A stretch of DNA of 64,000 nucleotides. Source: Oikopleura dioica (Eukaryota; Animalia; Chordata). Under the pieces are notes generated by a model. That model worked only from the letters and a program-made list of their open reading frames with translations, was not told the DNA's origin and searched no databases. The position numbers were made by a program, and so were the translations under genes. The DNA is taken from NCBI GenBank assembly GCA_907165135.1, contig OU015566.1:7750001-7814000 (forward strand). The letters run 5' to 3'. Each line of letters begins with the position of its first letter. Position 1 is the first letter of the stretch. Positions 1-60,957 of the stretch are shown piece by piece.

Positions 1-810
1 AACGCGGCGAGGGGGCGAAGTTTTCGTGTAAAAATACGCGATACAGGTTCACGAAAAATTTTCTTGAAATACCGAGTGATTAAACTTATGTATTATTCAG
101 CAGATTTTTTCATTACGGTCAGTGGTCGTTTTTCACCGAAAATTACGATTTTCACTTTGACAATAATCCAAGATAAGGACAACGGGTTAATCTCCTGACC
201 AAACTAGTGCTCCTCTTTGAAAAAATTCTTTTTCGCTGAGCAAATTTTTCCTCTTCGCATTTTTTGTTACACATTTTGGCGGAATAAAAAGCGGCGATTA
301 ATCTGATTTGCGGCTTTTGCTGTTGCATTTAACCGCGCTTGCCAAAATCCATCGGGAAAAAACGAATTTCGCCACGGATTTGCGGCCGCCCGGAAATCAT
401 TTTCAGTAATTTTTCTTTATTGTTTATCACTGCTGATTTAGAAAGCTTGCAAACTGCGCTTCTGTATTCGGTAGAATGGATCAAGTTCAAAGAAGTGAAC
501 TTCCGACAGTGAAGAGAAGATGCACGGCATAATCTTTGTCCGGGCGGGGTTTCGTCCCTTAGAATTCACCGAATTGTTATCGCTGAATTCTATAAGTGGC
601 TTTTCTTTCAAATGAAAGGGATGATGAGATGTTTCGGTGGCAGCGCGGGCAGTTGTTGATATAACACTGCCCTAGAATCCAATTTTACTGGGCTGCGCTT
701 TTTCGTACAAAAATTGTTTTTTATATCTTTCCCTTTTTATTGTTCTCAAATAAGAATGAGTCAGAAATGAAGAAATTACATTTTTACAGTTTGAAATTGA
801 GAAATGAGAG

Positions 811-1290: not shown

Positions 1291-4200
1291 GCTAATTTTT
1301 GATTAATCCCCATCAAATGTTTATTGGTTTCCGATTCAAAAAGATAGCTCACTGGAATCTCTCGTTTTTCAAAATCTACAACACCCTTTTTTCGTGACAT
1401 ATTCTAAGAGGAAATTCAATAAGAATTTTTCGAGCGAAAAATGGCCCCTCTTTTTATGAGCTCATCTGAAAGAGCATAAAAAAAGATAACTGTCATAGAA
1501 ACAGTTATTTGCGTGTTGATCCTACAGTAGGATTTCAAACTTCCATCGGACAACTATTTCTTCTTCTAAAAGGGTCCAACTCGCCGAAAATTTGCAAATT
1601 CAAAACGAGTCCTGTAAGAAAGCGTCGCGAGTTGTGTTCAGAATGTCGTGCATGCGCTTTTTAGATAGCATTAGTACTTTGCGCACCAAAAGGTGTGAAA
1701 ATGAGCAGTCGAAAAATGTTTCTAAATCCATTGAAAAATGCTACAATTGTTTTGACAAAAGACAATAGAATGAATGAGAATTTGACGTTTGCAGATTTTC
1801 GAATTTTTCGAAATCCAGTCGGGGTTGAGACAGTAATGATCCGTTGCGGTGCTTTTTGAATCCTTGTCTAAATAACAGTATTCACTCAAATTAGGGTTCT
1901 AGCTTTGGCGAGCCGTAGATTTGCGATTTATAGAGTTGCTGATTCAGAGATTCAGATCAATTTCAAATCAGAGCTACAGGGAAGTACTTTCGAGGAAATT
2001 ACAGTATTCAGCCAGAAAATTGATGATTCATCAGTCAGGATGGTCAAATTCAAGCTGTATTTCAAAGCGAAAAATAATTATTATGACTTGTCAAAGAAGC
2101 TCAAAGAAAAATGTCTTCAAAGAAATGACATCAACAAAAAAACTTACGGTATTATATAACAAGCGTTTTTCACCATTCCTCGTTCGTTGGAATGCTCCAG
2201 CTAATTTTCTTTTCTCTCTGCTTTTGTTTTTATCTGATCAGAAATTCAGCGATTATCTATTTTTCGTAACCTGGAAATTCCGAAGCGTCCACCAAAATCA
2301 GCTGCTTGAATTTTTTCCTAATGCGCTTTTCAGTTTCCTCCAGATTGCAAAAATCCCTTTTTTCCATATTCAATGAATTTTTAATCATTATCAAGGCTTT
2401 TTGGTCCGTTAAAATGGTCCTAATCTGCTGAGAAATCTTGGCAGTCTGCAGTAAACGGTAAAAAGAAGCTCAAATCAAATTCGTTTTTTTTTGCACTTTT
2501 CCAAATTCGCTATCAGATGGAAAAGTTCCGAGTGTCTATTTTGAACTGCGATTTGGGAGATTGTGCACTGAGTTTATAAAACAAGTTATCTCCTAAGAAT
2601 ACTGTTTTTATAAAAGCTTCTCACATTACAAAAAGTCCAGATTTAGAGCCTAGAAATGCTTAATTCAAAAAATAGCATCGGAGCTTTGAATTTTCAATCA
2701 AGCAATGATTTAGTTCCAAAAAATGGATTTTTATACAAGACCGAAAATAGCGGAGATTATACAATCGAAAACTGTTAATTCTTAATTAAACTTAGCCGAT
2801 TGAAATTTTCTAGAAGGGGCTACAATTAGAGCTACCCCTTGAAACCCTTTGAAACTAACCCCGGGGCTGTGGCCTGGGACCCCCCTCCTCCCCCTCCTGA
2901 CACAAAACCAATATCAAGGGGATTCACTCTTCCCAATCAAGGGTTTTCAATCCCTAACCCTAACTTGTTTAGCTCGAAAAAAACTATGGTTTAAAAAAGA
3001 CAGACTTCATCCATTTTCTTCTACCACCCGTATCCGTTTTGATCTTCTTGTTCCTTTTCTGCATCTCCGAGTACGTCACCTGATAGATGACCAGATTAGT
3101 ACTTGGCACGAGTCTGTCAGAGTTTGCGTCTTTCGCCCGTGACGATCGGGCGCGCGCGCTCTCGTCCAGACTCAGATGGCGCTCGTGAGCTAGCAGCGCG
3201 CGCACGACCGCTGCTCAGCGCTGGCGACCGATTTTTTCGTGAAATTTTGTTTTTGCTCATCGACCGAAATTTGTACTCAGCACTTTCATAAAACACACGC
3301 TTTTAACGCTTTTTATACTTTTAGCTTTTTTGCATAGACATTTTCATCCATAGAGATCAACAGAGAAACATTGTCGAAATCAGTACTTTTTAACTAAAGT
3401 AGAAAAACCGTAGTTATGCTTTGCCACTCGCGGGGACCGAAATTCCCGCGATTCCGGAAAAAGAACAAACCGGAATCGACGGAAAAGTCCATTTCATCGG
3501 ACCATTCCGCCAGGTATAAAAAATATGCGCGAAATAGCGCGAAGAGAGGCTGACGAAGACGGGTTAAATCTTACGTGAAGAATTTTTGAGATGTTTCAGG
3601 ACAGATTTTAAAAGGATATTAGAGGAAGAGAATGTTATTTTGTTAATTTTTATGGGATGGTCTCTGGAACCGACAAAAAAATTTCGACAAATTTTGCGTA
3701 GGCGGCTACTCGGCAGCTGATTGTCCAGTTTGCCGAATCCAGGCTTCTGATTGGTTGAAAATTTCCACGCAAAATTTGTCGAATTTTTTTTGTCGGTTCC
3801 AGACACCTCCCCATTTTTATTTCATAAAAATTTTTATTTTCAAATATTGGATCTTTTTGTTTAAATTTTCTATACTTTTTGCCATTTTGAGAAACCATTT
3901 AACTCATTCCTTTTTGCTTATTTTATTATTTTTACTGGTTTTATTTATCTTGAACCTCAGGAAAAAATTTTTGCATACTCTGGGTGAATTTTTGCTCAAA
4001 ATCATTCAAAAAACAAGTCGCTCCAATTTTTCCTCCAGGAAACCGTATCTCCTAGACCGGAAATTGAGTTAACCCTGATTTGCTCACCCTGTCTACCACC
4101 ACTCGTTCCTTCCCCAAAACACTAGCCAAAACATAAATCAACACCCGAAGGTTGAATTCGCAGATTTCAAAAACAAACACTTTTACACCGCGAGAAAGGG

Positions 4201-4517
4201 GTTTTCCCATGCGCGGAGGGGTTAAATTAGCGGGCAAAGCGACGCGTCCCGTGAGTTGGAGCTTCTTTGTTGACTGTTATTCAGATATTTTGGGAACAAA
4301 ATTTTTCTTGAACTTGATTTGAAAACCGTAAAATGCTATTTTCTATTTAAAATTTGTATTTAAAATATTCCTTTATGATCGACTCCATCAACAAATTGCA
4401 ATTCTAAGCGCAAAATATGCAACCTCGGAAAATTAAATGAATAAAAAAACTGTTCTTATAAAAAAATATATTTGGATTCCAGGTTAAATCATAAATCCAA
4501 CTAAGTGCTCCTCAAGT

Positions 4518-4544
4518 TTAACCCCTTAGCGTCGCTTGGGTCAC
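4518..4544 (+). mobile_element. piggyBac-like transposon terminus (TTAA + CCCCTTAGCGTCG)
   Basis: TTAA 4518-4521 followed by CCCCTTAGCGTCG; the exact reverse complement plus TTAA is at 18889-18905, with a shared GGTCAC subterminal motif. Confidence 0.45.
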
Positions 4545-6858
4545 GACTCCAGCTCGTAATGAGACTCTCGCATTGAGTGAGCTCCCCCTCTTCCCTTAAT
4601 CTATTCCTCAGTAAAAGTCCAAAACGTAAATTTGCCTTTGAGTTAATTACCGGTTCGTTTTTCAAATTTCAAAGTTATCCCTTTTTCAACCGGAAATTTA
4701 CGTGAGCCGGAATTTCGAGACATTTTTTCTTTCGTTTCCATATTCACGAAAAGGGGATATACACAAAACGGGACTTCGCCCGGCGTCGTTTCCGGTGAAG
4801 AATGAGCTTAACCCAACTCCAACTCAGCAGGTTTCAATTCTGGGCCTGGGTCCGAGCTGCGGTGGAGTCTTGACGCGCGCTAGAACCGCCGGACACATCT
4901 CAGGAACGTATAACTTGGGCTTATTAGCACTATCGACGAGCTTTAAAACAGCGCTGTGATGTAATTACAGACACGAAAATGTGGCCAAAGTGGTGCGTTT
5001 TTCAAAAGTCCAAGATGAGTACTGAATTTCAGCAGTAGTCATCGTTAAAATGAAAAACCAAAGTAGTGATACCCAAATTTAATTCGCGATAATAATGATA
5101 AAATCATTTATGTATTTGCGAGAATTAATTCTTACTTATCTTTATATACAGTTATTCCAGAAAAGTTGAAAAAGGACACATCAATCGCTTCCCCCAGCGC
5201 TAGTTTATTTTACCTTCGTGGTGCGACTTTTTTATTTCTTGGAGATTCCCGGCTGTCGGCCCGAGCGTCTTTTATGTTTTCCCGTTTTTTCGCCCAGACG
5301 GGTTAAGTTTCTCAGGGCCAAATTGTCTGAAAATGATTCTGTTTTCGACTCTTTTTTCAATTGACGAATCAATCGACTTTTCTTCGATTTTTAAGGTCGC
5401 TAGCGTTTTGACTCAAAAAGATACTGTAACTGTAAGTCTAGTACAAATATGATTTCATCAAATTCTAGCCCAGCGATGATGCTCTAAAATATGACGCATA
5501 GAACCAGATTAGTTTTAAAGTTTCGCTAGTTCCTTTAAAAATTACTCGAAAGCCCTAGAAAATATTTTTTAAAGCTGGGATTAAGGTTTACACGTTCGTT
5601 CGAGCTGATTAGATCACGTGCTGGATCTGGCGGCGACTTCTAAGGGGAAATACAAGTTCCGCCAAAAACAGCTCTAGCACGGCGCGAAAAACGGGATTTG
5701 CTGACACTTTGGGGCTTAAACGAACCTCGTAAATATAAATCCAGCGAGTTATAAACACATCTGTTTTCGCTAAAAACGAATCATCCGAAGACTCCGCATT
5801 TTTCAGCTACAGTTTTTTCTTTGATCAAAAAATAGTCTTCTTAAGGGGGTCCCCCATGAAAAAAAACAATGGGGACCCCCTAGAAGTCTTCTTTTTTAAA
5901 ATCAGATTTGCAATTTATGCAAAAACCTGAGTCAGCATCCTGAAAAAGCTTTGATGAAAAGAAGCAAAATTAAGGGTATCAACTACCAAAAAGGACTCTA
6001 TCAAGAGAAGACACAGAAGAATGAATATTGCTTGTTTTATGATTGTTGGATTATCCAGCTCTTAACCCTATTTAGAAAGAATTATAAGTAGTAAAAGGTT
6101 GGTTTCGTAAATCCTGTCTAAGAGAATAATTATCTCTAGTAAGGGAGTCAACTATTCTCACGTTATCTTGGGCACGTTTGTCAAAAAAAATATTCTAGAG
6201 GCAAGTGTGTAAGCCGATCAATTCAAAAGTTATCAGCGCCTGAATTTTGCGCTCGAGTGTTGCCCAAACATCCCCCAAAAAATGCTCGAAATTGCATAAA
6301 AAACAGGATTTAGACTAAATGGCAGATAAACTTTTATAGAGTGCCGCGCAAGAATTGGTCAAGTACCGAATATTGCTTCTCTAATAGCTCGAATTTTTCA
6401 ATAAAAATTGCCGCTTGCGGCTTCGAGAAAGTGAAAATAAAAAAAAGCCGCGCTATGTTTTTAAACTTTCGATTTTAGAAAGATGAATTTTTGAGTTCAT
6501 TTCTTTAATATAACTTTCACATCGTTGAGAAATCAATCAAGTGATTTGACGTTCACATTCTAGTGCTTTCTAAAGTTTGTTTACCATTACTGCTACATTT
6601 TCGCGTAATTTGGGAAACTCGGGAAAGGGAAAGAGAATGTAATTTCATAAGCGTCTGATCTGAACATTGATGCCCGTCTCGATAAGACTTGAGACGTATT
6701 CTAACGGACGTGCGGCAGACGTGGCCGGAGTTTCGTGAATTCTCAGCGCGACCGACTGGACCGCTAAATTCACCACTTCTCCGCTGCCCAGACGATTTCA
6801 TAAAGTGAGTGACCTTTTTTAAAGTCAGTTCCGGCGCATTTAAATGTTCCAATAAGAA

Positions 6859-41306: not shown

Positions 41307-43158
41307 TTAGAGGCTACAGTAATCGACAGGACTAACAAAAATTAATGGAAAGTAGTTTTCATATCCTTGTTCATCTGCAATAATGCTCGTAAAGTTTACT
41401 TCTTCATTTCCATCTTCACCCAGTTTTATGAGTTGAATAGGCGATACTTTTTTCATTCTAATTAAATGAGAAATTCCGGGAGAAACAAAAATAGAGCTCT
41501 CCAATTGAATCGCTGATGAATAAGCAATTGCCTTAAAGTAACGAGAAAAGCGAGCGGAAAAAGTTAAAAGCAATTTACTTTTAAAAGGACTCCTTCAGAC
41601 GACCAATTGTTATTCCACAATTTCCAAATTTCGTTGCATATTTCAAATATAAAACCATCCTCTGAGAACGATCCTCCAATCGTCAAAAGACTCCCTGAAG
41701 GCAAACCAATTGTAGAAAAACTGTAGATCCATCTGAAATTGTTGCAATATAACAAGAGTTTTTTTTCGCACCTCGGATGGGGTTTCAAGTATATCCAGCC
41801 TTTTTCTGTCAATGTTTCCACTGCACGATCTCCAGATGATAAGGCTCCTCCGACGGCAGTTGGACGACCTTTATAGAGGCCTAACTCGCCGTATTCGTGT
41901 CCTGCTCTCGTGGAAGATGTTTTCTTTGAACTCAATCCATCAAAAGACTCGCATTTTGAGTTTTTCTCTACGTCGAAACAAATAATTGCTAAACACAGAT
42001 TTTCGATTAAGATTTTAACAAAAACACAAAAAAAAAATTATTTAGATAAACCTATACTACCGCCGGTAAGTGTTAAAGTTGAATGACTGTGCCCATAAAT
42101 AGGGCTCACCATTTGCTTTATATTTCTTCTCCTAAGAGGTACTTTATTTATATTAATGTTGACCCGGCAGCTGCGTGGCGAGCCCTAGGACCATAACTAT
42201 GAAACAATCGTGCTGATAATTCCGTGAATCGGCACCCATCTAACCGTGCTATCTAAAAATTAAATTTATAAAAAAATCTTTATGTTATCTTAACTTTGTA
42301 TTTATCTTCGTCTCCTCCAAATATATGGACCTGACCATTAACAAGTGCGTGTCTTGTTGAGTAAAGATATTTGGAAAGGTAATTGTCGTATTCAAAGGGA
42401 GGTGAAAAGAACGCTTCTTTACTGACGATTCTGCCGTCGAGTAATGCATAATTCTCGCGGGGCAAGGACATTTCAGAACGTAAAACATTGATTTTAAAGC
42501 TTGAAGATGTTGAGTAGATGAAGTTTTTGATTTTCGAGGCGTGATCGAATTTAAAAATACGGATCTTTTTGTTTTTCATTGTCTTGATCAAGTCTTTGCT
42601 CATCTGAATTTCCGATTTCGTTTCGCTATGTTTCTTTTCATTCTTAAATTTTTTGAAAACCAGAGTCAGAAATAAAATCATGAGAATAATTCTAAAAGCG
42701 TGAATCTCAAAAAATTCCTCAACAACTTCAAGAGTAACCGATCCGATCGATTGATTCGACTTCAAATAAAGTACACATTGCTTTAGTTGAGAAGCATCTG
42801 AATTGAAAACGAATGTTTCATCAAAATAAGCAGAGTCCATCCAAATCGAGCTATTTTCGAAAATCCCGAAGTTCATCAAACTTTTCTCATCGTAAAATCT
42901 CAAATCAAGAATTTTCGTTGATTTTGAAGCGCGCAACTGCTCCTCAAAATCGATCTCAAATTGAAATTTTTCTGTCCCATTCAATCTCAGCTCGATAGTT
43001 GAAATATGCTTTAGCTCTTCAAGCGCAGAAAAGTAATTATCCGGAATGATGGTATTGTGATAAAAGCTTGGACGAGGAAATCTCGGCTGTGAGGCTGCAT
43101 TTTTGGCAAAAGCTGGGAAGACATCGTCGTGGAACGCGAAAAAAGGGTTGCTGGTCAC
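41307..43158 (-). CDS. Kelch-like beta-propeller protein of an appendicularian-type expanded family (upstream part of the ORF has a TM segment)
   Basis: HALVNGQVHIFGG, IARLDGCRF, IICFD..KCESFDG, LGLYKGRPTAVGG, LLTIGG, C-terminal PLIFVSPVDYC; exons phase-consistent if 42087-42184 is spliced. Confidence 0.6.
42099..42188. mobile_element. 90-bp hAT-like MITE inside a coding exon
   Basis: TIR TAGGGCTCACCA / TGGCGAGCCCTA (11/12); flanking 8-bp TSD GCCCATAA (42091-42098) / GACCATAA (42189-42196), 7/8. Confidence 0.75.
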
Positions 43159-43633: not shown

Positions 43634-45905
43634 TTAACCAAAATTATGAACTCTTATCAAAGGAACAACATGCACGGGATCCAAGTCTCTGAACTCAGCC
43701 GACAATCCGATCTCATTCTTTCGCCACCCTTTTTCCAACTCTTCGCTTCTTCGAATCCTGTTCAAGGCAACAGTCGTGGAGAGCTTGATATAATGATCGC
43801 CCATCTTCACGCTCATCAGATGAAAAACCCCGTTAAAGCTAATTGATGACACTTTGGCGTTGAAATGGTTGCTTGCGATGAATCCTTGGCCTTCCTCGAA
43901 GCGGTCCAAGTTATAATCAGGAGCGAAGTAGAAGCACTTCTCATTTCTCTCTGTCGGTGAGCTTTGAGTGGTCAAAAACATAAATGAAAATAATATAATA
44001 TAATATATCCTTATTTGACCCTGAACAGATGACGACAACTGGAAACACCTTTTTGCCTTTCTCTTTTTGACGAATTTCAATGTGATGAGTTCCAATGGAC
44101 GAGCCAAAATGAAAGACAAAAAATTTTCTGAAAAAAAAAATATTTCTTTTATTAGTTTATTCTCTATATTATAAGGACTATATGTAGGGTTTTTCACGGA
44201 ACGGCGCGGCCCGCTCTGGGGTCCATCCACGAATATTAAAAGTCGTCTATTGAAGCGAAATTGATAATTCAAAAAATGAAACCGACTTATTCAAGGGAAT
44301 AGATTCATAATATCGCATTAGTTTTTCTTTCTTATGCAAGAATTCGCTGCAAGACGGTTTTTCTTACTAAATTTCGATTTTTTAATCTGAGTACATCAAA
44401 ATACACTCTCTATTTTCAAATATGTAGGAAATAAGATGTTTAATTTTCAGCTCTCAAAATTTGGGATTTCGGAAACTTTCGGAAGGTGTTCGAATCGACA
44501 GATAAGTGAGTGAAAGTGACTGCGCGCTAGTGCTTTACGCCGCTGCGCGGGACGCCCAAAAAGCATTAGCGCGCGCCATAATCCCAGCGGGTGGTTTCTA
44601 TGACCTAGTATCGGAAATCTGATGCGAATTACACCGGGTGATTTGCACAAACAGTTTCCCGGAAGTGTCAAGCTTCGTATTTGAGATGAATTAGTCGGAT
44701 TTATATCACTCGGGACAACAAAACTGATGAGATCCTATTTTATCTTCCTTATCATTATTGCACCACCACCAAGTCAGAATTTGATAATAATTTTCACATA
44801 TTTGAACTCAGCGGCTCAAGAAACACTTATTTAGAAATTATCAGGCCCATTGAATGATATACTATTTTCCGTGAAAAACCCTAACTATATGGTTATAATT
44901 TGGGAAGCCCCTAACTCTAACGGTTAGAGTCTAACCTTGCAGCTAAGCCCCGAGACTCCTCCCTAACGTTTAACCAAGAGGACTTCGCCCCCAACCGGGA
45001 CCCCAGAGCTTTCAGTCCTCTAACCCGAAACCCAAAACGAGATAATGAGTTTTCCTACTAACATATTTTTGTTCCGATTAACAGTTATCATCGGCGCAGT
45101 GCCATCCTCTTTCACTCTCATCAAATTGCCAATAGCATCGACCAAATAGTGCTCGTCATTCAGAAAAGTAGCGCCTGTTGACTTGAAATGCGTTTTTAAT
45201 AAAAAGAATCTACGTTTGTTGGTTTGCTACTGGTAGTAATCTACTGAAGAAGTAAAAACGTTCATAAGGCAAGAAAGAGTCCGTATCATTTACACGAATT
45301 TTCTTTTTGTGATCATCCAAAGAAGAAAGGACAATCGGAAATGTCATTTTTTCTGCTTTCCGATCATGCCAGCGACCAGTTATCACTGAATCTGATATCC
45401 AAATGCGGTCGGTTTTATATGGTTTTGGTTTCTGCAAGTCAAAAACAGGCGCCAATTTCTGATATGAATCCAATTTCTCGCACTCATAAAAAGGACATGG
45501 ACAGCCATAGGGACAATACTTTTCAGTTGGGCAAACTTCTCCGGCGGATTCAGAAGATCTTGTCAGTTCAAAACACATCGACTCACAAGGGGAGATCGAC
45601 TTCGTTCTTGTTGATGTCAAAAGAAGCGTTTTTGAACAAAGATGGCGACAGACTTTTTGATCGTAGAACTTTTTCTTCTTGCAGCGAATGAGATTGACTT
45701 GATTTTCCTCATTATCAAAACGAATGGGTTCCCTCTCAGGAAGCTTAATTTTGGAAGCAGGTTCCGGGAGAATGAATTCTTTTGTTTCATAACATTCTTT
45801 CATTAGATGTCCACAATAGTGAAGTTCGGCGATTTTTATACATTTCTTGTAATTTCGGTGACAAGTTGAAGTAAGAAAAGTTGCCACGCCTCGAGATTTC
45901 TCCAA
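43634..45905 (-). CDS. Cys-rich, appendicularian-type secreted/kelch-associated protein, fragmentary model
   Basis: 45210-45905 contains SPCESMC and CPTEKYCPYGCPCPFYEC; 43634-44000 is a plausible terminal exon; intermediate exons not resolved. Confidence 0.45.
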
Positions 45906-54565: not shown

Positions 54566-55242
54566 TAATCTAGAAACAACGAAATCTTTAGTTGCGTGGG
54601 CTTAAAATTTGACAAATCTTATTGGCTGCCTGCTCCGATGTCTCAAGCTTACTGAAGCCTAACTCATCGGATCTAACGGTTTCTTGATAATCTAATAATA
54701 TTAAATGATGCCGAAATTTCCTGCAGGTAGGCGCTTGATGAAAGAATTTTTGAACACTGATTTTGGTTTATTACTTCATATCAATTCATTTTGAAAGTTT
54801 TAAATTTGTGAAAGTCTAATGAAAACAAAGAAGAAAGGGTGAGAAATGCAGAGGAAAATAAATAAATTGCAATAATACTATCGAGCAGTAAATTTTTGAA
54901 CATATAAATTCTAGAGCGAGGATACAAGCATTCTTTGAGGCTGTGACGGTTGACTCAACATTCCATTGTGGCAGTCTTTTTCGGGATTCATTAAATTTAT
55001 GAATATAAATTTAGAATTTCAAATTTTGTTAGTGACCGTTCCACTAGAACGATCCAAATGAAACTAACAGCGGAGCATCACCGAAGATCACAACAGGAAA
55101 AGCTCCCCGCCGAGTGTTTTCTGGTGCCACCAGTTTAAAAGCGGTATTATTTAGGGATCTGCGATGCGCGTTTCCCAAGCACAGATTAACTCTCATTCAA
55201 ATGTATCGAAATCATTTAGAACATTGTACCAAGAAAACCGTA

Positions 55243-57483
55243 TCAATAAAAATAAAGCTTTATCATGAATAGCTCTGGAGATTTTCTGCTCGTAAATGAT
55301 AAATAAAACAGTTGTCTATATTTTGAGATCCTTTCCTTGACATCGTTGAGCAGGGTTTGCCTACTTTTCGTCCAGTCGCATTCTTTTATTCTCCTAATTA
55401 CGATCGGTAGGGAAACTCGATGAAAAATGAGCTTTTTTTAGGGCTTAGTAGGGAGGAAGTATAATACAGTTTTAGAAAGCCCAGGAGCTGGGGATCATTT
55501 TGACTATTGATAGTAAGGGGTTTGACTCATGCCCTGGGGCACTTTTGGCCTTCCAAAGGGCCAAATTTCTGGTACTCTTCGGATAAGGGACCGTAACTTC
55601 TAGTATCCCGGGTCTATGGAAATAAAACTTATACTCGGTTGTAGAGGAGGCTCTGACGGTTCCGAATATGTATAGAAAACCACCGGGACCCCCACCTCTA
55701 GAAGGTGCTAGAGGCTCTAGAAGTTGAGGAAGTCAACCAAAAATCGGTACTTTTTGTCAAAAAAGTGCTGGAAATGCTGTATTTTCATTCGAAATCGATT
55801 AAAATAACATTTTTGATGATTCTGTTAGATTAAAAATAAGTTTTGGGGTAATTTTGGGCTTTTTTAGGTCATCAAAAGCGAAAACTAGAATTTGCTGAAA
55901 ATTCACCTCAAATGACCTCAACTGAAATTTTTGAATATCACAAAATCGCTAGAAATTATTTTTAATCGATTTCGAATGAAAATACAACAATTCCAGCCTT
56001 TTTTAGGCAAAAAGTACCGATTTTTGGTTGACTTCCTCAACTTCTAGAGCCTCTAGCACCTTCTAGAGGTGGGGGTCCCGGTGGTTTTCTATACATATTC
56101 GGAACCGTCAGAGCCTCCTCTACAACCGAGTATAAGTTTTATTTCCATAGACCCGGGATACTAGAAGTTACGGTCCCTTATCCGAAGAGTACCAGAAATT
56201 TGGCCCTTTGGAAGGCCAAAAGTGCCCCAGGGCATGAGTCAAACCCCTTACTATCAATAGTCAAAATGATCCCCAGCTCCTGGGCTTTCTAAAACTGTAT
56301 TATACTTCCTCCCTACTAAGCCCTAAAAAAAGCTCATTTTTCATCGAGTTTCCCTAACGATCGGCATTACTTTTCCGACGGATTTCGCGTTGATCAGCAT
56401 TTGTTTCGTAACATTCGCCACGTTCACTTCTTCATTTTCTTTCCAACTTTTTCCGTGGTCCAAATTTTTATCAGCAATGGAAAGTTACGGTTAGTAAATA
56501 ACTATTCTCCGGCTACATTTCAAAAAAATAATTCAATTTTCATTTCTCAAAAGACAATCTGACTGGTTCGATCGCGCGGGCGCCCAATTAGCGCAAGCAT
56601 CGATTTCGCCATATGAAAATTCTCTTTCTAAGCCATTATGGTCTTTTTCGCGAGAAAGTAAAAACTAACGATAAACTGTAATTTGAACCCTGTCAATCAT
56701 AATCGGTCACCATTGCCATCGATGCATACTGCATTCCCATTTCTCGAGCAATTGACGCTAGAATTGCCCTTTTTATAACAGTTTTTCACGAAAACTACCT
56801 TCAGGACACGTTGTCATATTGACAATTTCTGCGTTGTAAACATTTCTAAAAACGCAAGATTCCGCAAAAGTCGAGAATCTGGGTCCTTCGATGCAAACTG
56901 TCGTTCCTCTCGTTTTGTGTTCAACCCCACTTTCGCGAAGAGACTCTATCAGAATCTCTCGTAAATCTTCATCGAATGCTGGTTTTGACGGCAGATGAAT
57001 AATTCTAAAAAACTTATAATACTCTAATATTTATCGTCTCTTTCTTACCCTCTGGGTCCTCCATTTTCGATGGCAGTTCCAACATGCGTATTCAACCTGT
57101 AACCCTTGGTCATGTCAATATAGTCTGATAAGACTACCAAATCGCCCGGCCTGTACTCCTCCTTCAAGCTTCCACAAGCTGTAGTCGCTACAATGTGCGT
57201 CACCCCGAGCCGCTTCAGTGCCCACAAGTTCGCACAATAATTCACTAAAATAGAACTTGATAAAATCCCACAAAACTATCTTACCTTGGCTGGGAGACTT
57301 GTTGTGCAATCTGCCATGTCTGGAGAGAATGAAGACCGTCTCTCCATTGACTTCTCCTTTAAAAATGGTCGAAGGGTGTCCCCAAGGCGTATTCTCTATG
57401 TTTTCTAGCTCTTCTCTGTTCGCCACGATCGTAGGGTCATCTAACCCTGTTCCGCCAATAATCGCTATCACTACTGTACTCAT
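55243..57483 (-). CDS. MTAP: 5'-methylthioadenosine phosphorylase, with a MITE inserted in a 3' coding exon (3' end approximate)
   Basis: [54 protein letters not shown](C)WKE; the C-terminal helix ([12 protein letters not shown]) lies on the far side of the 55408-56356 insertion. Confidence 0.92.
55408..56356. mobile_element. 949-bp hAT-like MITE with ~349-bp perfect TIRs and 8-bp TSD
   Basis: TSD ACGATCGG at 55400-55407 and 56357-56364; termini TAGGGAAACTCG / CGAGTTTCCCTA; arms 55408-55756 and 56008-56356 appear to be exact reverse complements, extending ~50 bp further with mismatches; no ORF. Confidence 0.95.
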
Positions 57484-58432
57484 TCTGAAATCTTTGAAAT
57501 TCAAATTGAAGTCTGTGTAATTTGAAGTTTTTAATTTATTTTGAATAAGAAATATCAATAAATTTTCATAATATTCTTAAAGGCCAGCTTAATGGGCCTA
57601 ACGGTTTCGCTATCCACATGGATACTTGGCGATTTGTCTGTTTCATTTTATTTTCTTAAAATTTTTTCTATATCATATTTTTCCGAATTATGCTCTCTCC
57701 TCAAAGGTCGTTTCTGTCGTCTCTTCAGGGGCCCAGACTGCTCTCTATCATCATCGGCAGCCTTTAAAAATTATCGTTTCATTTATCCTTCCCGTTTTCT
57801 CGGTGCATCGGCGAATCTGGCCATATATAGTGAAACCAATGTCGCTTAGCCGGGACCGACCGAGTCGTGAGTCAAACTCACTGAAAAATTACATCATTAG
57901 CTTAGTTCTAAGCTCTGCTCAGAGTTGAGTCAGTAGCCTAAGGAATCGGACGGGCCGGGGGCAAAACCTCTTGTTTCTATTTTAAGTTTTTAAATAATAG
58001 ATGGAGTAGTATGACCTTGTAACCTCGGATCATCGTGTGCCTCTTTGACTTTTCCTTGCCTATTTGATTGTAATTTATTTAGAATGCAAACATGTTTGTA
58101 CAGTCAGAGAATCAGTCGCCTGATGAAATCTGCAGAGATGAAGAGTGTGACTCTTACCAAACTATTGATCGCTTCTGAATTCGTTTTTCAATTCCAATGA
58201 GATCAAGAATCAAGAGCGATGATCGTGAACTTGAGCTGCTGGAGGCGATTGTTGCGCTCGTTAAAACCTCCAAGAGCGCGCGGCAAAGCTCAAAAAGGCT
58301 CTCTCCCCACAGCTGATGAGTACTACCGAACCAAATAACAACAGTCAAGTGTGAAGAAAACCCACGCGAGCCCGGTGCTTTTGTCCCTTTTCAACCCCCT
58401 TTTTGTTTTATGAAATCGAGATTTGAACAAAA

Positions 58433-60957
58433 ATGAGAGGATCGAAATGTCTGGTAACGATAATTTCCGCGACTTCTGCCGGAGATTACTCGCCCTACGA
58501 TACCCATTATGCCCAGGGAATTCATGCGTATGAGAATGTAAGGCTTCTACCCTCGTATTGTTATAAAAAGTTATTTACAGGAAAACTGGACCGAGGCAAT
58601 AACCGAATTCGAACGAGCAATAGAAGAGAGAAACCGTTATTTAGAAGCAAAGGTGCATTGCTCAATCGATAGCTGTGGAAACATCACCGGCGATTCCCTA
58701 AAGTCCCTTTCCATCGGATCCGGCTTTAGTCAATACGTCATCGCTCGCGGGCTCTGTCTTTACAAATGTATGTCTGAGGCGATTGGGAAGAAATACGTCG
58801 ATTGGAGGATTTTACCTTCGGTGGATGAAGAATTTCAAGCTCGCCTGCCGTACCAGTATCTCAATGTCGCCTATTTCAAAAGTGGAAACATCAGAAAAGC
58901 GTTGGAAACTGCCTTTACTTTCTTCAACGCTGATCCTTCCGATCCAGGTGATTTTCACCCCTCTTTCTTCTTTCATATCATCTTTTTAGAGATGCAGGAT
59001 ACCCTGGCTTTTTACCAAGAAATGGAAGAAGTTGACGACTCCATGTTTGTCGATATAGAAAATCCAGAGCATCTAAAGCACTACGAAATCGCCCAGTCAG
59101 TTTATCAGCTCGAAGATTATCCTCAAGCGATTTCCGAATTCGAGCAAAGCCTTCATTGGTACTGGGACAGTATGGACGAATGCAGAGCGCTCTGCGATGC
59201 TCCGTTTGATTTCGGCGACGATTATCCAGACGAGCTGCCAAATTATCATCTTTTCCAGACAAAAATGGTTGCACAGCTACTCGAATGCCGGCTCAAGTGC
59301 GTCAAACAAATGGAACTGCCATGCGGCCGGTACCATCGTCGGTCGAACAGCGATCTTCTGCCGATTCATTACCATTATTTGATGTTTGCTTATCACGAAA
59401 TCGGGGATGATCCAAAGGCGGCTTCGATGGCAAAGACATATCTGACATTTCATCCTGACAATGAGCCTATGCAGATAAATATACAGTTCTTCGATCAGGA
59501 AGTTTACGAAGCTGCACAGCCAGAAGAAAAAGCCGTCAAGTTTCACAAAAAACTCATGCGAGAAGTAAAAATGCTCGAATACCTTGAACATCACTTTGGC
59601 CCGACATATGGGTTCAAATACGACTATGCCTTGCTCACGCCCTTTCCCGACGAAATGTTTTTCGAAGCGGAAGATGAGCGGCTTATGAATGAAGATATCG
59701 GAGATATTGACGAGAACTCGCAAACTCCCTGGGATCCTGAGAACGAGGTCAAAGATCCGCCGACTTTTGGACCATCTTATGATACTCCCTTCCCTACTGG
59801 TGCTGAAATGTAAGTTACTTTGATATTAAAATGCGCTGATAATACCTCTTCTTAGAGGTTACGAATCGGTGGCGGAGAAAATCGATGATCTTCTTTTCGA
59901 CCCCCTTGCGGAACCTGACAAAGTGAAACAGGTCGATACCGTTCACGGAAAACTGCCGTATTACTCTGCTGGTGATGAGAAATTCGGATATGTCGTGCGA
60001 GATTCGCCGAAATATAGCGTTTTTGACGATGGGCCAGCTGTGAATGCAGAAGGACCAGTCGCTGATGGAGCTGTTTTGAAGCAAAACTCGACACGTATTT
60101 GTTCTTCTATTTTTTGCATTTTCAATTGTTCTTTTAGATCTTGCGGGACCGACGAGATTTGTCATGGACGGTCTTTTATCAGATGAGCAGTGCGAGTCCT
60201 TGTATAAACTCGCTTCTTACGGTATTGTTGGAGACGGCTACGAAGGGGACAAGAAACCTCACTCAAAAGGAGAAGAGTTTGCTGGAATCAGCCTTCTCAC
60301 TGCAGCTAGATTGGCAGATATTGGAGCGGTAGAGACAGCAGCGGTTCAGCTCTATCACGACATCAATTCTAAGTTAGCAAAGATCGTCAAAGAGTATTTC
60401 AAGCTGGAGACTGATCTTTATATCGGTAAGCCTAGTCCTGATTCAGTTTTGGAGTTGACTTTCTTCATCTAGATTTCATTCATCTGGTTTGTCGAGATCC
60501 GAAGGATGAAAAAACGACCGACGAAGATGGGAACATCATTCTTTCGCACCCAGTCCACCCCGACAACTGTCTCTACCTCCCCGACGGAACTTGCCCCCGT
60601 CGGCCGCCAGCATACGTCTGGCGAGAATACTCGGCCGTGCTCTATTTGAACGAAGACATTGAAGGAGGCGAGATCTTCTTCGCGGATCCAAGCGGCAAAT
60701 ACGCACTCGCAGGGGTCAAGCCGAAGTGCGGCCGTCTTGTTGGCTTCTGCGCCGGGACAGACTGTCTTCACGGTGTCAAAAAGCTCACCGGAGGCAAACG
60801 TTGCGCCTTGCCTATTTGGTACACGACGAGAAAAGAGAAAGAAGATTTCACGCTCGAAGATGCTCGTGCGATTCTCAAAAGACTCAATTCTAGCTCTGCA
60901 TCAAACACAGATTCTGACAGTTCTGAAAAAATGCCCTCTGAAAAAACTGAACTCTAA
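58433..60957 (+). CDS. P3H1: Prolyl 3-hydroxylase (leprecan family), ER-resident
   Basis: Signal peptide, CRTAP-like N-terminus (YQYLNVAYFK), FVMDGLLSDEQC, GDGYEG, HPVHPDNC (HxD), YSAVLYLN, KPKCGRLVGF, HGVK, C-terminal KTEL. Confidence 0.92.

Follow-up and report, generated by a model that had tools for sequence, protein, structure and literature searches.

A Young hAT-like Foldback Insertion in the Last Coding Exon of Oikopleura dioica MTAP, a Probable Truncating Allele

The MTAP Locus

The window (the whole 64-kb stretch of O. dioica DNA that was analysed) contains a single MTAP gene on the minus strand, and the fifth exon of this gene is interrupted by a transposable element (Table 1). Pfam family PF01048 (PNP_UDP_1) matched exons 1–3, and exon 3 matched solved MTAP chains (e.g., 1cb0 residues 136–201, E 9e-13). 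The family and structure matches agree with a first-pass annotation, made from the sequence alone, which had placed the insertion in an MTAP coding exon; the exon is the last coding one. When the C-terminal piece was aligned with solved MTAP structures, the matches were at chance level only, and a literature search on the function of the C-terminal MTAP residues gave no result. Counted from the exon 3 match and the human sequence, the insertion point is ~30 residues before the end of human MTAP.

Table 1. Coordinates of MTAP and of the inserted element within the window. A slash marks a splice junction.
Feature	Position	Strand	Basis or remark
MTAP exons 1–4	57483–57285, 57244–57049, 57004–56799, 56757–56694	-	Borders placed by motif
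MTAP introns 1–3	Between exons 1–4	-	GT-AG, 40–44 nt
MTAP intron 4, 247 nt	56447–56693	-	Borders by motif
MTAP exon 5, part upstream of insertion	56365–56446	-	WKENEE...GKVM, then PIV of the duplication
MTAP exon 5, part downstream of insertion	55243–55399	-	IRRIKECDW... to stop TGA 55245–55243
949-bp non-autonomous foldback element, termini TAGGG...CCCTA	55408–56356	.	ORF list: longest ORF at most 42 aa, mirrored in the arms
Left copy of 8-bp target-site duplication ACGATCGG	55400–55407	.	
Right copy of 8-bp target-site duplication ACGATCGG	56357–56364	.	
Left inverted-repeat arm	55408–55804	.	Perfect to 55756, then 6 mismatches
Right inverted-repeat arm	55960–56356	.	Perfect from 56008
Central loop, 155 nt, partly paired	55805–55959	.	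Repeat search and RNA fold
Candidate GG donor (TAG/GG), route (a)	56352–56353	-	Read from sequence
Candidate AG acceptor (AATTAG/), route (a)	55394–55395	-	Read from sequence
Premature in-frame TGA inside element arm	56341–56343	-	252 aa + RETR
AATAAA in gene sense, possible early poly(A) signal	56138–56143	-	200 nt past the premature stop; use inferred

A search for a full-length Oikopleura MTAP protein record returned genomic ORF fragments only. The readable contig L001 of a TARA metagenome ended at exon 2, and a protein-guided scan of JGI metagenomes with the C-terminal piece of MTAP gave 0 confirmed loci. After the residues NDVKERIS, the MTAP tail of this genome (55243–55300, minus strand, ...FY) was wholly unlike that of the metagenome ORF P0001 (NFYYFGFIEMG...), so either there is no constraint on the last ~25 residues or the true end undergoes different processing. 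The neighbour of MTAP at 58653–59813 (plus strand) is a single ORF of 386 aa, prolyl 3-hydroxylase-like (PF23557). It is 28–32% identical to proteins of insects and mammals, whereas identities of 98% and 84% were found with proteins from Logan, ENA, and JGI.

Structure and Classification of the Element

The inverted repeats of the element were assessed via self-comparison and a repeat search. When the element was compared, ungapped, with its own reverse complement, there were 0 mismatches over bases 1–349 of each arm and then six up to base 397. The inverted-repeat search delimited arms of 410 nt with 98% complementarity (55395–55804 and 55960–56369), 155 nt apart, and the same 8-bp direct repeat, ACGATCGG, stands in exact form on both borders of the element. 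A perfect inverted repeat of 349 bp together with an exact 8-bp duplication cannot be due to chance. The first-pass annotation had described a 949-bp element with apparently perfect 349-bp terminal inverted repeats (TIRs) and an exact 8-bp target-site duplication, and this description was borne out by the self-comparison.

Terminal inverted repeats of hAT transposons are usually 10–25 bp long, and MITEs are small (under ~800 bp), non-coding, and present in high copy number. The terminus of the element at MTAP, TAGGG...CCCTA, fits the hAT end motif YARNG, which, with the 8-bp duplication, agrees with the earlier description of the element as hAT-like. It shares with non-autonomous hAT elements the 8-bp duplication, the YARNG-type end, the absence of coding capacity, and the high copy number, but its inverted ends, perfect over 349 bp and ~397 bp in all, are foldback-like. 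With regard to MITEs, the element is non-coding and its depth is high in both of the DNA runs described below, but with 949 bp it exceeds the usual size. The weak hAT target preference nTnnnnAn does not fit the duplication observed here. Neither a second copy of the element nor a transposase or autonomous partner with matching ends was seen within the 64-kb window.

To place the element and its insertion site among other samples, we aligned contigs to positions 55050–57550 from two DNA runs (X25 and X29), which belong to different studies but bear the same species label. The summed contig depth on the outer arms was 3560–4641 in X25, against 37.6 on the flank, and up to 32668 in X29, against 62.8. 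The family depth was thus ~100–500 times the flank depth, a ratio of summed contig depths that does not equal copy number. Pieces at least 99% alike to the element numbered 75 in X25 and 318 in X29. The element family is clearly abundant and high-copy, with near-identical members.

A 25-mer of the element end had 0 matches in JGI metagenomes. The sole Rfam match of the element was to the precursor of the plant microRNA MIR8562 (RF04128) over the inner hairpin (55697–56067), and it was rejected as sub-threshold (67 bits versus a gathering threshold of 211). As nearly all pairs in this alignment are compensated and a long hairpin is matched to a long hairpin, we regard the match as a structural look-alike.

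Empty Site, Polymorphism, and Age

The state of the insertion site in other samples was determined from the same contigs. A 787-nt contig from X25 consisted of 55050–55399 joined to 56357–56591, with two mismatches on each side. At the joint, 957 bases are skipped and eight bases are common to both sides, which is the exact empty site. Two contigs from X29, with depths of ~62 and ~65, had the same 957-base skip. The filled junction was found in none of the listed contigs of X25 and X29, which show presence, not absence. The insertion haplotype is marked in its flank by 55101 A and 55322 T, and none of the aligned X25 contigs carries the flank variants of the window.

Since the empty site occurs in two independent DNA runs, with flanks almost identical to those of the window, the insertion is polymorphic for presence and absence. 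The site was empty in all three contigs, and the view of the insertion as very recent has held up, given the perfect ends and duplication and the empty-site DNA in two other runs. Two results are new here: that other DNA samples carry the empty allele, and that the element family is present in many copies.

The insertion might also be foreign to the germ line, either because the assembly is wrong or because the element inserted in the soma or in culture and is found in only some of the sequenced molecules. The lack of the filled site among the contigs listed for X25 and X29 is compatible with this, as is the difficulty that long palindromes pose for assemblers; however, those contigs do not show absence, and a complete member of a high-depth family that is bordered by an exact 8-bp duplication bears the signature of true transposition and not of misassembly. 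Plain assembly error is ruled out by this signature, and we consider an origin outside the germ line very improbable overall.

We also aligned RNA from two oligo-dT runs with the same species label (10 and 16 reads). All reads were 90–95% alike to the window, and the runs therefore represent a divergent lineage without the insertion and are silent on the filled allele. On exon 5, this RNA runs past 56360 as a loose end that translates as PIIIRKIKEQDW, that is, the exon is uninterrupted. The marine metagenome ORF P0001 (69 aa) likewise spans the insertion site without interruption. As both the divergent-lineage RNA and P0001 read through the site, the empty state is ancestral.

Predicted Product of the Filled Allele

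When the element and one copy of the repeat are removed, the MTAP coding sequence is 912 nt long and encodes 303 aa, with an open stretch of 94 aa across the joint of the emptied exon. The filled allele, if unspliced, encodes 256 aa (252 plus RETR), and the last 51 residues are lost. The in-frame TGA that had been reported inside the TIR was confirmed. No database record was found for the 40-aa truncated ORF of the filled allele.

These features are in line with an ordinary young and probably damaging insertion allele, in which a high-copy, non-coding, hAT-like foldback transposon truncates MTAP; we consider this the probable reading of the locus. The default transcript would either terminate within the element, at a poly(A) signal there, or carry the whole hairpin. 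It would encode the 256-aa protein without the last 51 residues, which include a conserved C-terminal segment, and the filled allele would be a loss-of-function or weakened one. Such an allele may persist as new, rare, or heterozygous and would not be built for splicing. Where genes are densely packed, chance hits on exons would be expected from an active family with many copies, and the damaging alleles that result would be short-lived.

With ordinary polymorphic truncating insertion alleles, the filled MTAP allele shares its presence in one haplotype and absence in others. Its last exon also gains, as in such alleles, a premature stop along with a possible early poly(A) signal. The allele differed from them in nothing tested here.

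Candidate Splice Routes

Two in-frame routes for the removal of the element had been proposed in the first-pass annotation, and the arithmetic of both was correct when recomputed from the sequence. Route (a) would use a GG..AG intron (56353–55394, 960 nt) and give PIV-RRIKE with the loss of one Ile. Route (b) would use a GT..TC intron of 957 nt and restore the exon exactly. Because of the 8-bp duplication, there are nine exact-excision windows of 957 nt, with the ends CC..TA, CG..AC, GA..CC, AT..CG, TC..GA, CG..AT, GT..TC, TT..CG, and TA..GT. None of the nine has G-N..AG ends, and none ends in AG. The canonical GT at the border of duplication and element falls in phase 0, and the AG dinucleotides nearby all fall in phase 1 or phase 2. 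The GG..AG of route (a), which is inexact, is the sole G-N..AG pair that keeps the frame.

The RNA of the element was predicted to fold into one continuous stem of ~400 bp that starts from within the duplication (-807 kcal/mol). The stem begins right at the exon ends, as predicted by the earlier suggestion that a hairpin would juxtapose them. In this fold, the perfect duplex takes in the GG donor as well as the segment from 14 to 40 nt upstream of the acceptor, the expected place of a branch point and a pyrimidine tract. Being buried in this way, they argue against easy spliceosomal removal, for all that the hairpin brings the exon ends together. Judged by its sequence and predicted fold, the element is poorly suited to removal by the spliceosome. 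The proposal that the locus represents the starting state of intron gain was not supported, given that 0 of 9 exact windows have G-N..AG ends and that the hairpin buries both the donor and the segment that precedes the acceptor. Of the two outcomes that had been offered, a null allele or a nascent intron, the first is the better supported and the second the weaker.

A nascent intron would mean that the spliceosome removes the element as the GG..AG intron of route (a), yielding a functional MTAP of 302 aa from an allele that could spread. Besides the in-frame junction and the exon ends set side by side by the hairpin, this possibility draws on the general features of introns in the species. Non-GT/AG introns make up 11–12% of the introns in O. 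dioica assemblies, where the median intron is 49 bp (PMC8008620), and transposon insertion is listed, on indirect evidence, among the sources of Oikopleura introns in Table 1 of PMC3443670, which cites Denoeud 2010. The share of non-GT/AG introns and the in-frame route at a cost of one Ile were both counted against the truncating reading. The candidate intron is, however, more than 20 times longer than the other GT-AG introns of MTAP (40–44 nt), its donor context (TAG/GGGAAA) is weak and located at the foot of the perfect duplex, the sequence leading up to the AG is likewise paired, and the site was empty in each of the three contigs from the two other DNA runs. We regard splicing by this route as possible but unlikely.

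A further point on either side of this question comes from intron 4 of MTAP, which is itself transposon-like and non-canonical, and older than the insertion. A CAGGGTTCAAATT terminus follows one base after its start, and the frame is kept only if its ends are AC..AG or GA..AA. That MTAP already has such an intron was counted in favour of a nascent intron. In the divergent-lineage RNA, however, the 3' edge of intron 4 was crossed unspliced by 5 reads of run X5 and 12 reads of run X6, and the loose end of these reads was homologous to intron 4 of the window. Intron 2 was spliced in a few reads of the same RNA. Small in number and from another lineage, the reads do not suggest efficient removal of transposon-like sequence in MTAP. 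One DNA haplotype of X29 lacked, or had a replacement of, 85 bases in intron 4 (56452–56536).

Comparison with Transposon-Derived Introns

In the related larvacean Fritillaria borealis, transposon-derived introns are spliced on a genomic scale, most introns are non-canonical, with inverted ends and target duplications, and a modified U2 spliceosome carries out their removal (PMC11282704; PMC13326754). This precedent was counted against the truncating reading of the MTAP allele. Non-canonical 3' ends in F. borealis accompany lineage-specific duplicates of U2AF (PMC13326754).

A further possibility is an exact, structure-guided removal, in which the hairpin-paired ends would be cut and joined at borders other than G-N..AG (e.g., GT..TC, 957 nt), so that the exon would be restored. 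Such a process would resemble that of the Fritillaria transposon-derived introns or of the nonconventional introns of Euglena. The nine exact windows would suit it, as would the start of the pairing in the duplication, at a CGATCG palindrome, and the requirement of intron 4 for AC..AG or GA..AA ends. However, splicing of this kind was not reported for Oikopleura in the literature examined, the non-canonical 3' ends of F. borealis go with U2AF duplicates specific to that lineage, and the F. borealis signature (YAY before an AG start, YAY at the end) yields no frame-restoring intron here. Fritillaria-type removals with AG..AC or AG..AT ends were also tried and rejected, as the frame was not restored at the MTAP site. 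We assign exact removal only a very small probability.

The element can further be compared with introners and the F. borealis introns as a class (Henriet et al. 2019 via PMC11282704; PMC13326754). Shared with these is an inverted-end DNA transposon with a target duplication in a larvacean coding sequence, as well as a splice route, here a candidate one, via the element's own end. The MTAP element differs from the introns described there in having no exact G-N..AG solution and in its ends, which are unlike YAY/AG...YAY. Typical introners are also much shorter and less strongly paired. A broader proposal is that the TAGGG-ended transposons with 8-bp duplications in this Oikopleura genome act as introners, an active system of this kind in a chordate, and that the MTAP copy is a polymorphic intron at birth, which would be removed with the aid of the hairpin as GG..AG at the loss of one residue. 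We find this proposal doubtful, somewhat more so than the splicing of the MTAP copy by itself.

If carriers were to splice the element out, the locus would represent a rare dated intron birth in an animal, and its empty and filled alleles would open the spliceability of transposons to direct experiments. Otherwise, the insertion is a routine damaging one. Even then, it would show that the transposon family is active at present in a genome of great compactness, and would point to private gene-breaking alleles being carried by reference assemblies made from single individuals.

Other Elements in the Window

A second element with TAGGG...CCCTA termini was located at 44185–44883. It is 699 bp long and has inverted ends of 19 bp (TAGGGTTTTTCACG...); the 8 bp duplicated on either side (ACTATATG) match exactly. 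Its empty site is crossed by no long ORF and so looks non-coding in context. In addition, an 88-bp element with TAGGGCTCGCC ends was located at 42100–42187 (minus strand) between two short open stretches. The ORFs that flank it are short (16–29 aa), and GG..AG removals of 59, 80, and 98 nt all keep the frame open.
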